A DNA stretch of 64,000 nt from Thecamonas trahens ATCC 50062 (Eukaryota; Protista; Apusomonadida). Where the stretch lies: contig NW_013657629.1 in NCBI RefSeq assembly GCF_000142905.1, forward strand, positions 62,001 to 126,000, in the 5' to 3' direction. Position 1 is the first letter of the stretch, and every line of letters begins with the position of its first letter. Shown piece after piece: positions 47,126 through 54,408 of this stretch. The notes beneath the pieces are model-generated. The model searched no databases and was not told the DNA's origin. It saw only the letters and a program-made list of their open reading frames with translations. The position numbers and the translations under genes were made by a program.

Positions 47126-48769
47126 CTACGCCTTGGCACGCTTCCCTGCCGGCTCGCCTTCGGCTCCGCTGACCCGGCGCTTGCTCCCAACAGCCGCAGC
47201 ACTGCTGCCTGCGTCGTTCCCCCCGGCAGCCGCGCTCGGATCGCCGCGGCGCTTGGCCGCGTAGGCAGCCTTCATCTTGGTAAGGTTCGCAGTCTTGGCT
47301 GCCGCATGGTCAACGATCGGCTCTGGATAGTCGCGCCCAAGGACCACGCCCGCGTCGGCGAGCACGTCCTCCGGTGCGTCGAACGGTGCCATGAGGTGCT
47401 TGTCTGGCAGACGGGCAAGCTCGGGAACCCAGCGGCGGACATAGGCGTGGGCAGACGCTCCATACTTGTTGCCAAAGCTGATCGGTGAGTACACCCGCCA
47501 GTACTGGTGGAAAAAGGCCGAGGCTGAGAGCCAGAGCCAGTTGCCGATGTTGAGGTAGTGGTCGGCGTCGAGAAGGAGCGAGTTGAACACTCCCGCACCG
47601 GCCTCCCAGCTCTGCCACAGGTAGCCGCGGGTGAGGAAACAGGCCACAAGGTGGCGCGCCAAGTGATGAACCCATCCTGTTGCCCGCAGCTGTCGCATCA
47701 CTGCGTCGATGAGGGGGAAGCCGGTCCGGCCCTCGGCCCACGCCGCCACCTTGTCCGGCTCGTCATCCCACGGAATGATGCGGGAGAGCGGATTGGTGGC
47801 CATCGCCTCGTAGCCTGGCGTCCGGCTCCCAACCACTGTGTAAAACTCGCGCCACAGGACCTGGCCCACCAGCGAGACCGGCGGCTGACTCACACTCCGC
47901 TTGCTCTTCTCCTCCACCGCTCGCAGCTGCTCGTAAAACCGCCGCACAGAGAGCGTGCCAAATTTGAGATGTGCAGAAAGGCCCGTAGTAGATGGCGGCT
48001 CGGCGAATGGATTGGTCTTGGGCTTTTCAAACGTCACAACTCGGTCCACGTCCGCAAGGAACGCACGCATCCGCTCTTGCGCCTCGGCCTCACCGCCCGG
48101 AAACGCGCGCGAGCTGCCGTCGCCCTCGCTTCGCCCAGGAAACGCAGCCATACCCGGAACAGCAAACCGCTCAGTATCCTTTGCTACCGCGTCGACCGCA
48201 GCCTGAGGCAGCGGTGGCAGCTCTGTCGGCGCCTCAATCGGCGCCTGCGGCTGCCACCCGCGCTTGGCGATCAGCTTCCTCATCCCACCAAACGTCGTCG
48301 GTAGCGCGGCATCCGGCACACTCTCCCACACTTCCATCGGATAGATCAGGTTGGGCTCGCTCGTCTCCACCGCGAGCTTGTCATCGGCCGCCATCCGTGT
48401 CGCCTTGGCGTCGCGGATCTTGGCGTATGGTTCGTAGTCGGCCTCAAAGTGGAGCGAGTCGGCCCCGACCTCGCGCCACAGCGCCTGAAGTGTGTCCAGC
48501 GCTCCCTTCTCCGGCGTGCCCTTGATCACCAGCAGCTGCGAGCCGAGCGCCCGCAGCGACGAGTCCAGCGCCAACAGCGACTCCAGGAGGAAGACTAGCC
48601 GGGTGTCGCCGACGTACGCCCGGGTGAGCAGGTGCGGATCGAGGACAAAGACAGGAACCACCGCGGCTGCCGCATCCGCCGCCGCCGCCAGCGCCGGGTT
48701 GTCGTCCACCCGTAGCGCCTTGCGGAACCACACCATGGCCACCTGTCGCGAACCCATCCTTGCTGCCAT
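47126..48769 (-). CDS. (6-4) photolyase / animal-type cryptochrome family protein
   Basis: VWFRKALRVDDNPAL; FPGGE.EA; FEKPKT; TTGLSAHLKFG.LS; LWREFY; GRTGFPLIDA.MRQL..GWVHHLARHLVACFLTRG; LLDAD..N.GNWLWLS.SAFFHQY.RVYSP. Confidence 0.96.
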   Translation of the reverse strand: MAARMGSRQVAMVWFRKALRVDDNPALAAAADAAAAVVPVFVLDPHLLTRAYVGDTRLVFLLESLLALDSSLRALGSQLLVIKGTPEKGALDTLQALWREVGADSLHFEADYEPYAKIRDAKATRMAADDKLAVETSEPNLIYPMEVWESVPDAALPTTFGGMRKLIAKRGWQPQAPIEAPTELPPLPQAAVDAVAKDTERFAVPGMAAFPGRSEGDGSSRAFPGGEAEAQERMRAFLADVDRVVTFEKPKTNPFAEPPSTTGLSAHLKFGTLSVRRFYEQLRAVEEKSKRSVSQPPVSLVGQVLWREFYTVVGSRTPGYEAMATNPLSRIIPWDDEPDKVAAWAEGRTGFPLIDAVMRQLRATGWVHHLARHLVACFLTRGYLWQSWEAGAGVFNSLLLDADHYLNIGNWLWLSASAFFHQYWRVYSPISFGNKYGASAHAYVRRWVPELARLPDKHLMAPFDAPEDVLADAGVVLGRDYPEPIVDHAAAKTANLTKMKAAYAAKRRGDPSAAAGGNDAGSSAAAVGSKRRVSGAEGEPAGKRAKA

Positions 48770-49629
48770 TTGCTTCGGCTGCGTGACGTGTGGCCGCAAC
48801 TCGTCGTCGGTGACTCCGCTGGAACCTCCGCCATGCTAGCAACAGATGTTGGCTGATGTGACATGTTTGTTCGGTCTGGGTGCTCCTGTCATTAAACCCA
48901 TTTGGCGAGGGGACAATTTGGCAGTGGAACCAATAAAATGCTCAGCCGGACTCCCTGGGTTTGAATGCGTTCATCCTATGCTGAAAATACCCGATCCCGT
49001 CTCGCTCTCGGAAGTCAAGCAGCATGAGGCTTGGTTAGTACTGTGGTGGGGGACCACACGGGAATACCGAGTAACGCATTCTTTCTTCTTTTTGCCCAAA
49101 CACACACCCTCCCTGTCTGCATCCCCCCCCCCCCACACACATACATCGTCGCACTTTGGGGGACAAATGATCTGAGCTTGGATCGGGTTGGTTAGTCTAC
49201 GGGGAGCCTGTCGCCAAGTTGCGTGTTCGCTTGGCGATCTCGTTCACGATTTCCGACGGCCGGTCACTGGGACCAAACGGGGCGAAACCGTACTCGAGGA
49301 GGCGGAAGACAGTGGCGACGTGATCGGCCCTCCCATCACATCATGCATCTCACTCGGCTCAGCTGGGCCTAGCGGTGGTGCAGCGAATACGTCAAAGTGT
49401 GAGAGAGCGAGCGGGTGGTATGGTTCACGAATAGCCCACACACTCCGACAAATCGCCGTCTCCGCCAATTACCTTCCACACAACACGTGTCGTCAACTGT
49501 CCGCACGCGTCAAGCTATCGTCATCGATCGGGAACGCAAGGAAATTGGCTGACGCAGACAAAGCTCCTCGCGCACTCAGTGCTACTGAACCCCGTACATC
49601 TCTCTCTGCATCACCTTGCTCCCGCAGTT

Positions 49630-50751
49630 ATGCTCGGAAGCCGCAGCAGGTTGCTCTACGCGGCGTCGACCGTTGTCCAACTCTGCTTCTCCTTCGCCTT
49701 CTCGCGACTTGCGGGCCGCGCCAACAATGCCGTCCGCTGTCGGCTCGCCACCCTCTCGGCCATGGCGACGTCTATTGCCGCCCTCGCCGCTCTCCTCCAA
49801 GCCGGGGACATCGGTATTATCGCAGTCCATGGGCGTCCGGTTGCCTGGTCTCGCTACGCCGACTATGCGCTTGCTACCCCATGTATGTTGCTAGGTGTGG
49901 TACAAGCGTCTCCCCTATCCAACCCTGCGCTTTTTTTCTCACTTTCACTCACCCCCCTTCACCCGCACTCCCCCAACACAGTGCTCCTCCATCAGCTCCA
50001 GCTTCTGGTAGACATGGGCAGCGACGACTGCGCACGTGGCATGCTCTTCCAGGTCCTTATCATTTGCGCCGGAATGGCCGGGGCAATGATCGATGACCTT
50101 CCGGTCTCGCTGGCCACCGCTGGCTTTGGCGTTGTTCTCTTTCTCGCCAACGCCGTGTCGCTGCGGTCAGCGTTTACCCGGCTCGAGACCAAGGCCCGAG
50201 TGCGGACCTTTGTGGGCCGCTTTGTGACGGCGACTCTGTGCATCTGGATGCTCTACCCGATGTGGTGGCTTGTTGTCCGACTCGAGCTCATCGCTGACGA
50301 GACGTCGGCGGTGTTCAACCTTGCGTTCGACGCGCTGTGCAAGGGCGGCTTTGGTCTCGTCCTCTGGGCCTTTGCCCACCGCAACCGGGACGCCATCGAC
50401 CATCTCTCCACCGTAATCTCGCAGCCGACGCTGGATACTACGTCGCTCATCGAGCTTCATAGCGGGGCGAAGGCGCCTGCCGATAACGGTGCGTCTGTCG
50501 GGCTGACTGTCGACGTCGGCTTGCGGACGATGTCAGAGTCGTCGTCGTCGTCGTCGTCATCATCGTCATCATCGTCGTTGCTCATTTCGCAATCTGACTC
50601 TGATGATGATGCGACCGGAAAGGTAGTTACGGCCAAGCGAGTCTTGCGTCGGAAACGCCGAGAGAAGAACAGGTCACGGGCGATGTCGCGGACGTCAGCG
50701 CGTGTGGCGCCGGCGCGGTCGCCATCGCTGCCGCACATCATGGGCGTTTAA
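49630..50751 (+). CDS. Divergent microbial (type-1) rhodopsin with long C-terminal tail; at least 2 exons
   Basis: Removing intron 49883-49981 (GTATGT...ACAG) gives helix C WSRYADYALATPLLLHQL. Helix F IWMLYPMWW; helix G FDALCKGGFG with the retinal Lys; 7 hydrophobic segments. An extra upstream exon is possible (CCCGCAG near 49627). Confidence 0.9.
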   Translation: MLGSRSRLLYAASTVVQLCFSFAFSRLAGRANNAVRCRLATLSAMATSIAALAALLQAGDIGIIAVHGRPVAWSRYADYALATPCMLLGVVQASPLSNPALFFSLSLTPLHPHSPNTVLLHQLQLLVDMGSDDCARGMLFQVLIICAGMAGAMIDDLPVSLATAGFGVVLFLANAVSLRSAFTRLETKARVRTFVGRFVTATLCIWMLYPMWWLVVRLELIADETSAVFNLAFDALCKGGFGLVLWAFAHRNRDAIDHLSTVISQPTLDTTSLIELHSGAKAPADNGASVGLTVDVGLRTMSESSSSSSSSSSSSSLLISQSDSDDDATGKVVTAKRVLRRKRREKNRSRAMSRTSARVAPARSPSLPHIMGV

Positions 50752-50766: not shown

Positions 50767-53700
50767 TCATGCCCTCGGACGAGCGGCGCGGGCACAGCCG
50801 ACCACACGCCCGGCCCAGAGGGCAGCAGAGATCGGCGTCTGAGCCTCGAGCTCGATCAGATCAACACGCGCCGGGTTCTCCGGGGCGGTGGCAAGAATGT
50901 GGAGGCTGGTACCGGAAGCCTCGGCGCGAACTATGCGGTCGAGCGGGAGCTCCCAGTTCGGCGAGTCGTCTTCGATCGGCGCGGAGGCAGTAGCTTGGCT
51001 GCCATCACCAGCCTGATTGCAAGGATAAAGCTGCAGAGCATTCGGCGCGATGCGAGCAAATGCCAGCGGACGTGATGGGAGGGCGAGGCCGCGTGAGAGG
51101 CCACCGACAACGTCGCCGCGAAGAGCTGCGGTGAGGAGGACGTCGACATGGTGGGGCCCAACGCCAAGTGAGGCCCGGAGCTCGGCTGGGCTGAGCGAAG
51201 GCACCGCAAGGACGAGCCAGCGGAGGTACGTGAGGTCGCTCGAGGGGCAAGCCCGGGCGGCAGCAGCCATCAGCGGCGTCATGCCGGACTCGTGCGCCAC
51301 ATCGCCAAGCCAGAGGTCGGGTGTATGGAGCAGGAGTGCGTCCAGCAGCTCGGGCATGCTCTCGAGATCGGTGTGGAGAAGAGTGCAGCCGCCGACGCCA
51401 CGCGAGACATCAAGCGTTGGCCGCTGCGCCGCTGCATACGCCACCTCGCTGCGCCCGCACATGATGATTGGCGTTTGGTCGCCGGCAATAGTGACGTTGA
51501 CCTCGGCGCCGGCGGCGATGAGGGCGCACGCCGCAGCGGTGTTACCGGCCTTGACTGCGAGACTGAGCGGCGATGCGCTATCGTTGTTGATGGCGTCGAC
51601 GTCAGCGCCAGCGTCGATAAGTACCGCAACAAGCGTAGTCGCCATCACGTCGCGCACGTGGCTTGCGGCGAGATGGAGCGGATGCGCGCCGCGCTCGTCG
51701 GCCGCAACTACCAGCGACGGCGGTGAGGCGGCGAGGATGCACTCCAAGACTCGTGCAGCATCGCCAGGAGCAGCGGCTGCAGGCGGAGCGCATGCTCGGT
51801 GGGCGGCATTTTGGCCGCGACTGTCAACCAGGCTGACGGTGGCCTGAGCGGCGAGGAGGGCGACGACACCGTCGAACCATGTGCGACTTGCAGCGAGCAT
51901 GAGCGGTGTCTCCGAGCTGGCATTGGCATAGTCGACAGCGGCGGGACAGGCCGCCGTAAGGAGAAGCTCTACCACCGACGCGTTCCGCGATGCGACGGCG
52001 GCGTGGAGCGGGGTGTCGCCGCGGGTGTCGGGGGCAGCAACAAGGTCGCAGCAGGCGGCTGCTTCTGTTGAGAGGAGCTCTGCCACGGCGCCGGGCGAGC
52101 TGCGCGCGGCATGGAGGAGGGTGCGGCCCGAGGCATCGCGCCCGGTGAGCGGCCATCCCAGGCCGCGGAGCATAAAGCTGAGGGCAGCGACGTTGTCTGC
52201 CGCTGCGGCGCGATGGAGGAGATCGGTGGCTGCCGCGGTGCCGAGTGACTGCAGTGCAGGCTCGAGGACGGCCATGACCTCAGTGGGTGCATGGGCGGCG
52301 GCGACAGCGAGCGGCGAGACGGCGGCAGGCGAGAGGGTGTGGGCAGCGGCACCGGCAGCGAGGAGGACAGCTACAATGTCGGCTTTGCCACGGACAATGG
52401 CAGTGTGAAGCGCGGTGTACCCGGCAGTTGTGGCGGCGTTGATCGGCGCACCAGCGTCGATGAGGACCGCCACGGGTGCGGCGGTCGACGCCCACTGCGC
52501 GGCTGTGACGAGAACGGGCGATGCATAGCTTCCGTGTGTTGCATCGAGCGGCGCACAGAGGTCATCGACCAAAACCCGCATGACAGGCACGTGTTCTCCA
52601 GTGGCTGCCAGATGCAGCGCCGACGCTAGGACATCGGGGCCGATGTTACCGACACGGGCGAGGAAGCGGGCGACGTCGACCCGCCCGCGGCGGGCGGCAA
52701 GCTCAAACGCGGTGTGGCCGGCGTCATCCGTGGCAGCCACCGCAGCTGGTGAGAGTTCGACAAGCACTCGGACAGTCTCGAGATGGCCACCCTCAGCTGC
52801 TAGATGCAGCGCTGCGGCAATGCGCTCAGGATCGGCACCGCTCTTGACAAGGAGCGCCACCACTTCGGTGTGCCCCGAGCGGGCCGCGGCTTCGACGGCG
52901 CTGGGCGCGTCGCCGGACAAGCGGTCAAAGGTGCCGTCACATTGACGAGCGCCAGCTTTGAGCAACTCGCGGACGATGCCAAGGTGGCCGGCCTTGGCGG
53001 CGCCTGTGAGCGGCGGAGATTGCGGCGGCGCGTTGACATCGGCACCGGCCGCAACAAGCGCGGAGACGACCCGGGTGCGGCCGCGGGCGGCAGCTAGAGA
53101 GAGCGGCGTCGAGTCGGTGGCGGTCGTCAGCGCGTCAACTGGCGCGCCGGCAGCCAGAAGCGCGCGCACCGCATCGAGATTCCCAAGCAGGGCTGCAGTG
53201 TGGAGCGGGGAGGTGCCGGCAACAGCACGGGTGTCGACGCGGGCGCCGGCGGCAAGAAGCGCAGACGCCACATCAAGGTTATTCTCCTTGACGGCGTGAT
53301 GGAGCGGGGTGAACCCGTCGTGTGAGCGGGCATCGAGGGCAGCACCGCTGGCGATGAGCACTTCGGCGACCGCCAGTGCGCCGGTCCGCGCCGCGAGATG
53401 CAGCGGGGTGCGCCCGCTCTTGCTTTGCGCGTTGATGTCGGCGGCCGAGTGGCCAACGATGACCTTGGCCACTTTCGCATGGCTTCGCAGCGCAGTGACA
53501 TGCAGCGGCGTCCATTCGCGGTCGTTGACAACCTTGGGCGACGCCGCTAGCTTGTTCAGCAAGTGCTCTGTTGCGCTCACATGCCCGCACCACACCGCGG
53601 CGTGGAGCACCCGCCCACCGCAGTCATGAACCCGCGCGTCGATGTCGAACTCGAGGTGCTTGCCAAGGATCGCTAGCATGCCGACGTTGCCCGAGGCGGC

Positions 53701-54171
53701 AGCGAGGGAGAAGAGCTCGCCCACCTTTTCGCCAACCGAGCGGAGATTAGCAGCTAGATTGGCGTGGCCCATGCCCGCCAACAGAGCCTGCGCCGCCGCA
53801 CACCGTCCGCCCATCACCGCCACACGCAGCGGCGACGCATTGTCGTTTCGGACCTGATACGGGTTCGCCGATGTCTTCTCCAGCAAGTACGTGATGACCT
53901 CACCATGATCGCCAGCTGCAGCCACATGCAGCGGTGACGCGCCGTCGGGCGGTGCCCGCTCATTGACGTCCATGGCGACAAACTCCTGTCCCGTCACAGA
54001 CAAGCGGCTGCGGCTTTCACCGCCACCACCACTGGGCCGCCGCTCTGGCCCCACCTCGCCTCGCCCACGCACCCTATCGCCCTCCAACATCCGAGCCACT
54101 CGCCGGACGTCTCCACGTGCACATGCCTCATGCAGCGGTGTCCGCGACCGGCGTGACGGGATGCCTCCCAT
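50767..54171 (-). CDS. Large ankyrin-repeat protein, possibly N-myristoylated, with possible C-terminal PH-like fold
   Basis: Starts MGGIPS; more than 20 TPLHxAA..LLxAGA repeats. Confidence 0.9.
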   Translation of the reverse strand: MGGIPSRRSRTPLHEACARGDVRRVARMLEGDRVRGRGEVGPERRPSGGGGESRSRLSVTGQEFVAMDVNERAPPDGASPLHVAAAGDHGEVITYLLEKTSANPYQVRNDNASPLRVAVMGGRCAAAQALLAGMGHANLAANLRSVGEKVGELFSLAAASGNVGMLAILGKHLEFDIDARVHDCGGRVLHAAVWCGHVSATEHLLNKLAASPKVVNDREWTPLHVTALRSHAKVAKVIVGHSAADINAQSKSGRTPLHLAARTGALAVAEVLIASGAALDARSHDGFTPLHHAVKENNLDVASALLAAGARVDTRAVAGTSPLHTAALLGNLDAVRALLAAGAPVDALTTATDSTPLSLAAARGRTRVVSALVAAGADVNAPPQSPPLTGAAKAGHLGIVRELLKAGARQCDGTFDRLSGDAPSAVEAAARSGHTEVVALLVKSGADPERIAAALHLAAEGGHLETVRVLVELSPAAVAATDDAGHTAFELAARRGRVDVARFLARVGNIGPDVLASALHLAATGEHVPVMRVLVDDLCAPLDATHGSYASPVLVTAAQWASTAAPVAVLIDAGAPINAATTAGYTALHTAIVRGKADIVAVLLAAGAAAHTLSPAAVSPLAVAAAHAPTEVMAVLEPALQSLGTAAATDLLHRAAAADNVAALSFMLRGLGWPLTGRDASGRTLLHAARSSPGAVAELLSTEAAACCDLVAAPDTRGDTPLHAAVASRNASVVELLLTAACPAAVDYANASSETPLMLAASRTWFDGVVALLAAQATVSLVDSRGQNAAHRACAPPAAAAPGDAARVLECILAASPPSLVVAADERGAHPLHLAASHVRDVMATTLVAVLIDAGADVDAINNDSASPLSLAVKAGNTAAACALIAAGAEVNVTIAGDQTPIIMCGRSEVAYAAAQRPTLDVSRGVGGCTLLHTDLESMPELLDALLLHTPDLWLGDVAHESGMTPLMAAAARACPSSDLTYLRWLVLAVPSLSPAELRASLGVGPHHVDVLLTAALRGDVVGGLSRGLALPSRPLAFARIAPNALQLYPCNQAGDGSQATASAPIEDDSPNWELPLDRIVRAEASGTSLHILATAPENPARVDLIELEAQTPISAALWAGRVVGCARAARPRA

Positions 54172-54408
54172 GGCTACAGTGAGGTCTTTGCTGTTCACTG
54201 TGTGCGAGAAAGAGAGTGTGTGTGGGGGGGCGGACTGCGGCTGAGCCGAAGCCAGGCAAGCGTGGGCTGTGTTGGGTTGGCGTGGGGGGTGCTCGGTGGG
54301 AGTCAACGAAAAATTGCAACCCTCTGGTTTTTCGGGTCGGCAGAGAGCGTGCGTCTGCAGGTCTGCATGTCCTTGCAGCGTCGGTATGCTTCTTCACAAC
54401 TTAATAAC

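Follow-up and report, generated by a model that had tools for sequence, protein, structure and literature searches.

Very probably, the gene at positions 49630 to 50751 of the window (the whole 64,000-nucleotide stretch of Thecamonas trahens DNA analyzed here) is the single apusomonad rhodopsin (ApuR) gene of its genome, almost certainly that of TtApuR(DAQ), and its product acts as a UV/violet-absorbing light-gated anion channel. The gene is already known as a member of a characterized family, the ApuRs and their T. trahens representative both having been published in 2025. It is expressed and correctly spliced from two exons, and its product of approximately 340 residues is a type-1 rhodopsin with a retinal-binding lysine, K205, in TM7 (FDALCK). 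Table 1 lists the features of the gene, its neighbors, and two related loci elsewhere in the genome. Residue numbers are those of the spliced product, in which each residue after the junction carries its read-through number minus 33; the queries for searches, alignments, and the fold model were the read-through open reading frame (ORF) or the two exons separately.

Table 1. Positions of the rhodopsin gene, its parts, its neighbors, and related loci (window positions unless a contig and locus are named)
Feature	Position	Strand	Description
Rhodopsin gene, ATG to stop	49630-50751	+	Two exons, 49630-49882 and 49982-50751
5' untranslated leader	49596-49629	+	cDNA 5' end at 49596
Exon 1, coding	49630-49882	+	TM1, TM2, BC beta-hairpin, first half of helix C; Q17, S43, T47, A54, R75, D78 (49861-49863), Y79, A82 (49873-49875)
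Spliceosomal intron	49883-49981	+	99 nt, GT..AG, phase 1, in frame, stop-free
Exon 2, coding	49982-50751	+	Second half of helix C, TM4-TM7, tail, TAA stop 50749-50751; Q89 (49993-49995), D201 (50329-50331), C204, retinal Lys K205 (50341-50343)
Cytoplasmic C-terminal tail	50377-50748	+	124 residues, no known domain
(6-4) photolyase/cryptochrome	47126-48799	-	Intronless; PF00875 + PF03441; P0021, 547 aa
5S rRNA gene	48963-49082	+	Full-length; Rfam RF00001, 104.9 bits
Ankyrin-repeat ORF	50767-54306	-	1,179 codons; converges on the rhodopsin gene
Second rhodopsin	G000:C11, L010:2116-5340	+	1,075-codon open frame; Bac_rhodopsin 204-420, HisKA 442-497, receiver 916-1033
Retinal-synthesis fusion ORF	G000:C6, L008:1909-6282	+	CrtI, CrtB, and Blh domains in a single ORF, on another contig

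Residues and relatives of an apusomonad rhodopsin

The read-through ORF matches the Pfam Bac_rhodopsin model with 67.4 bits (E 1.7e-18; cut-off 24.6). Exon 1 aligns with profile positions 23-80 and exon 2 with positions 83-222, and the exons therefore abut exactly at the junction. AlphaFold2 modeled the read-through domain with seven helices (mean pLDDT 83.4, pTM 0.79) and a BC beta-hairpin at residues 63-72, and a Foldseek search with this model returned sensory rhodopsin II (SRII), bacteriorhodopsin (BR), deltarhodopsin, and Leptosphaeria rhodopsin at target TM-scores of 0.85-0.90.

The BR register was taken from the alignment, in which query residues 67-90 correspond to BR 74-97. R75, D78, Y79, A82, and Q89 occupy the positions of BR R82, D85, W86, T89, and D96, which gives helix C a D-A-Q motif with a Tyr at BR W86. 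In TM4 a Gln and an Ile sit under the Asp and Met of BR-like pumps (D115Q and M118I; alignment A1), and TM7 reads FNLAFDALCK, which supplies D212, Cys215, and K216. Ser makes up 27 of the 124 residues of the tail, including a run of 13 (about 50539-50577), and the tail also carries an acidic SDSDDD stretch and a basic patch, RRKRREK (50647-50667). The helix C motif with W86Y, the two TM4 replacements, the three TM7 residues, and a tail of more than 100 residues with poly-Ser and a basic patch had all been described in an earlier sequence-only reading of this DNA, and all are borne out; so is its assignment to the rhodopsins, which it would have given up had the Bac_rhodopsin profile or a structural match been missing. 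Its description of these residues as atypical holds as to their presence, not as to their being peculiar to this gene: W86Y, D115Q, M118I, and Cys215 are normal for ApuRs, the equivalents in SfApuR2 being Y81, Q110, I114, and C216.

The ApuRs are a family of light-gated anion channels that absorb UV/violet or blue light and comprise twelve proteins, all from apusomonads (Galindo et al., PNAS 2025, PMC12557545). Their TM3 motifs fall into two classes, DXQ and XTQ, rather than the DAE/XXQ motifs that the sequence-only reading had given, and they have an invariant Gln at BR D96, another in mid-TM1, and a Ser and a Thr in TM2; the C-terminal tails are variable and Ser/Thr-rich with putative phosphorylation sites, and the scaffold is BR-like and predicted to be trimeric (PMC12557545). 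The cryo-EM structure of SfApuR2 from Singekia franciliensis is a homotrimer whose pocket includes Y81 at the position of BR W86 together with Q110, I114, N209, D213, C216, and K217, with T54 at the central constriction and A61 in place of the usual Tyr57 (bioRxiv 10.64898/2026.10.19.760008).

The window protein carries the residues of this family. Its D-A-Q motif is of the DXQ class, with the Gln at BR D96, and the TM1 Gln and TM2 Ser and Thr (SfApuR2 Q24, S50, and T54) are present as Q17, S43, and T47. The pocket is of the DAQ type, with Y79, Q108, N197 four residues before the TM7 Asp, D201, and C204, and with A54 at BR Y57 (A61 in SfApuR2). The remaining SfApuR2 residues R77, D80, A84, and Q91 correspond to R75, D78, A82, and Q89, and those of the pocket (Y81, Q110, I114, N209, D213, C216, and K217) to Y79, Q108, I112, N197, D201, C204, and K205. 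Because every named pocket and gate residue of SfApuR2 has a counterpart here, the supposedly atypical residues are the signature of the ApuR family. The two proteins differ in the BC loop, which is longer in the window protein and modeled as a beta-hairpin, whereas the Singekia ApuRs have a short loop, and at SfApuR2 position 194, where a Glu is replaced by Val.

Close relatives are few. When 1.84 billion representative proteins were scanned in full with HMMER, only 16 matched at E<=1e-3; the best three, P0001, P0002, and P0003, are 27-51% identical to the window protein, and the remainder are generic rhodopsins at 21-31% identity. P0001, which has a DSQ motif, comes from a cDNA contig of SRR23274481 that carries a frameshift, and the sequence of the N-terminal frame is RYADYSLSTPMLMRQ. 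P0002, labeled in EukProt as the apusomonad Manchomonas bermudensis, has an ATQ motif and a Glu at BR212, and P0003 is a fragment assembled from ERR4592245. A word-indexed protein search gave no match with the single protein and P0003 as the sole match with the alignment, and a scan of JGI metagenomes found no relative; a marine metatranscriptome holds contigs at least 99% identical to the window gene.

The Logan contig of SRR23274481, L003, encodes at positions 3-952 a DSQ-motif ApuR homologue that is 45-51% identical to the window protein. The homologue is split between two frames, with the frameshift falling between TM4 and TM5 of the assembled contig, and this is probably an assembly error in the transcript of another apusomonad. 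The TM1 Gln and TM2 Ser are found both in P0002 and in the N-terminal part of L003, and the position of the TM2 Thr is occupied by Thr in L003 and by Asn in P0002.

Maximum-likelihood analysis groups the window protein with P0001-P0003 in a clade with 100/100 support, in a thin sampling that set four ApuR-type rows, of which two are fragments, against 13 unnamed outgroups. The stem branch of the clade, with a length of 2.54, separates it from the 13 other rhodopsins, and the genome's own second rhodopsin is among these and lies far from the ApuRs. The HMMER ranking agrees with this grouping. The phylogeny that the sequence-only reading had proposed as a check thus places the protein with apusomonad-type sequences, apart from the 13 other rhodopsins sampled.

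Probable identity with TtApuR(DAQ) and comparison with other rhodopsins

The host, T. trahens ATCC 50062, is an apusomonad, and six-frame searches of its 28.68-Mb genome (131 contigs) with the Pfam model and exon 2 revealed one ApuR-type locus. The ApuR paper likewise includes a single T. trahens protein, TtApuR(DAQ), reports that it has a small residue at the position of xanthorhodopsin G156, and mentions that the Tara Oceans data include a type close to it (PMC12557545). In our alignment the window protein has an Ala at the G156 position. Organism, DAQ motif, a small residue at xanthorhodopsin G156, and near-identical relatives in marine metatranscriptomes are thus common to the two, and on the grounds of host, copy number, and motif the gene is almost certainly that of TtApuR(DAQ).

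The absorption and conductance that we ascribe to the window protein are those published for TtApuR(DAQ). Expressed in COS-1 cells it had a bleach peak at 390-410 nm and was classed as UV-absorbing, and in ND7/23 cells its photocurrents dropped when gluconate replaced chloride, its reversal potential was close to that of GtACR1, and the current reversal followed the Cl- gradient (PMC12557545). The published reversal of TtApuR is nearer to that of GtACR1 than is that of SfApuR2, i.e., there is less H+/OH- leak. Taken with the apusomonad host, the family residues, and the clade, these published properties support the suggestion in the sequence-only reading of a short-wavelength sensory or channel-type rhodopsin of a non-photosynthetic protist that might belong to an apusomonad family of UV/blue anion channels.

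The assembly and the RNA-derived contigs are not identical over the gene. All four RNA runs (X1-X4, described below) have G>A at 49822, which changes Ala65 in the BC loop to Thr, and A>C at 50416, which changes an Ile in the tail to Leu; in addition, the poly-Ser tract (about 50528-50583) is 9 nt shorter in the X3 and X4 contigs than in the assembly. Either the strains differ or the assembly is in error at these sites, and because all four runs differ from the assembly at 49822 and 50416, the expressed or published protein may differ from that of the assembly by a few residues. The two nonsynonymous differences, and an identification with TtApuR made on host, copy number, and motif, leave some room for an ApuR-family gene other than the published one: another locus, a misassigned one, or a variant of the strain, with, for example, blue absorption or weak conductance. 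We consider this quite improbable: the 28.7-Mb genome has a single ApuR-type locus and is that of T. trahens ATCC 50062, the DAQ motif and the Ala at xanthorhodopsin G156 agree with the TtApuR report, and the residues that differ are in the BC loop and in the tail, away from the chromophore.

The closest solved structures raise the question of a BR/SRII-type function, either outward proton pumping or transducer-coupled sensing, since the best matches by both sequence and fold (TM-score 0.85-0.90) are SRII, BR, and related pumps, and R82, D85, D212, K216, and the BC beta-hairpin are all kept. Such a function is nonetheless very unlikely. The T89 and D96 of proton pumps are replaced by Ala and Gln, W86 and D115 by Tyr and Gln, and a long branch with 100/100 support sets the protein apart from the 13 other rhodopsins. 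Family members with the same motif, the T. trahens protein included, gave passive anion currents, and the ApuRs are reported as channels rather than pumps or transducer-bound sensors, their BR-like fold being ascribed to shared ancestry (PMC12557545).

Other known classes were rejected on their defining residues or on the extent of similarity. A DTD/DTE proton pump requires a Thr at BR89 and a carboxylate at BR96, where Ala82 and Gln89 are found, and an NQ-type Na+/Cl- pump (NDQ/NTQ) requires an Asn at BR85, where Asp78 is found. As for a green-algal or cryptophyte channelrhodopsin (CCR/ACR), GtACR1 matches the window protein over TM6-7 only, with an E-value of about 3e-4, and the top folds are those of SRII and BR. 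GtACR1 does share with the ApuR a light-gated anion conductance (published for TtApuR), a Gln at BR D96, and a Cys before the retinal Lys, but it belongs to a separate lineage; the cryptophyte ACRs have no TM3 Asp and absorb visible light, whereas the scaffold of the ApuRs resembles that of BR and they are reported as trimers. Independent origins have been reported for ApuRs and channelrhodopsins (PMC12557545).

Gene structure, expression, and neighborhood

The RNA-derived contigs define the ApuR gene from its transcript start through the splice junction. The X1 contig starts at 49596, behind a loose end that resembles the SMART template-switch oligo (TATCAACGCAGAGTACGGGG), and the first ATG after this cDNA 5' end is that at 49630, with none earlier in the leader. 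The splice joint 49882->49982, with GT..AG ends, is present in contigs of X1, X2, X3, and X4, which come from at least three studies; X2 is a marine metatranscriptome, and the X3 and X4 contigs are identical and could represent a single data set deposited twice. Intron depth is zero and no alternative register occurs in the contigs of all four runs, this being evidence from assembled contigs, in which a rare retained isoform could escape detection. The in-frame, stop-free intron of 99 nt that had been proposed from the letters is thus confirmed, by the kind of RNA evidence that the proposal had named.

The intron starts with GTATGT and ends with CACAG, and it interrupts a Leu codon (T/TG), the first base of which ends exon 1. 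Its G+C content (0.55) and in-frame GC3 (0.56) are lower than those of exons 1 and 2 (G+C 0.65 and 0.61; GC3 0.74 and 0.75). The 33 residues that it would encode form an insert that is absent from every aligned homologue and falls exactly between the TP and LL of helix C, which after splicing reads RYADYALATP-LLLHQ; in the AlphaFold2 model of the read-through form, the intron-coded residues 90-120 have pLDDT values of <50 and split the helix. Being in frame and stop-free, the intron leaves a continuous ORF of 390 codons that ends, intron included, at the TAA at 50749-50751, but the idea that this read-through form (373 aa) is the real product, or that the gene is a decaying pseudogene, is hardly credible given that every RNA-derived contig is spliced with zero intron depth, that helix C would be broken by 33 residues that are missing from all homologues and are modeled as disordered, that GC3 drops in the intron, and that the functional residues are all intact.

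The protein collections searched contained no copy of the read-through product and no sequence above 51% identity to it, and an exact look-up matched neither the read-through ORF nor the neighboring ankyrin ORF. The neighboring photolyase of the same genome is present in these collections, and the absence of the rhodopsin beside it indicates that the ApuR gene is probably unannotated in the public record.

The photolyase gene (P0021), for which the next-best match is only 58% identical, is arranged head-to-head with the rhodopsin gene across a gap of approximately 0.8 kb, and the 5S rRNA gene sits in this gap between the two divergent genes. It is conceivable, if unlikely, that the rhodopsin (UV sensing) and the photolyase (UV repair) form a unit co-regulated from the shared 5S-bearing intergenic region. 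On the other side, the stop codons of the rhodopsin gene and the ankyrin ORF are approximately 16 nt apart. RNA contigs cross this junction, from 50584 to beyond 50900, which makes it probable that the two transcripts overlap at their 3' ends. The second rhodopsin of the genome is a HisKA-receiver fusion in which Pfam detected no cyclase domain.

Proposed mechanism, retinal supply, and significance

Following the published ApuR work, the Schiff base on the TM7 Lys would be deprotonated in the dark, as expected for a DAQ ApuR because its TM3 Asp has no Thr or Ser partner. The Asp at BR85 would be without its Thr89 hydrogen-bond partner, which is Ala here, and for this reason the pigment would absorb in the near-UV/violet. 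For SfApuR2, simulations favor a neutral Asp80 (bioRxiv 10.64898/2026.10.19.760008). The reciprocal swaps SfApuR2 A84S and SfApuR1 S73A switch absorption between UV and blue. Light would isomerize the retinal and open a pore within the monomer through which anions pass passively, and the conserved TM1 Gln, TM2 Ser/Thr, and TM3 Gln would line or gate this pore. The Ser-rich tail could be a site of phosphorylation or regulation. The likely cellular role may be membrane-potential signaling to avoid short-wavelength light, a hypothesis that draws on the behavior of Podomonas.

The organism makes retinal itself, with a CrtI-CrtB-CrtY-Blh fusion enzyme. Translated from the fourth ATG, the fusion ORF yields a 1,458-residue protein identical to XP_013761525.1/KNC54618.1 of Thecamonas trahens ATCC 50062, and its domain architecture has been reported for T. 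trahens only (PMC10016063). With the fusion enzyme encoded in the same genome, the chromophore supply of this heterotroph is accounted for.

With the family and its T. trahens member already in print, the present analysis holds no new biology. What it adds is an exact genomic gene model, with the transcript start, a single phase-1, in-frame intron within helix C, and the stop, together with the RNA evidence for splicing, the apparent absence of the protein from public collections, the retinal-synthesis fusion enzyme in the same genome, and the neighboring genes. Interest in the ApuRs themselves comes from optogenetics, for which they would be UV-driven inhibitory tools, and from the photobiology of the sister lineage of animals and fungi.
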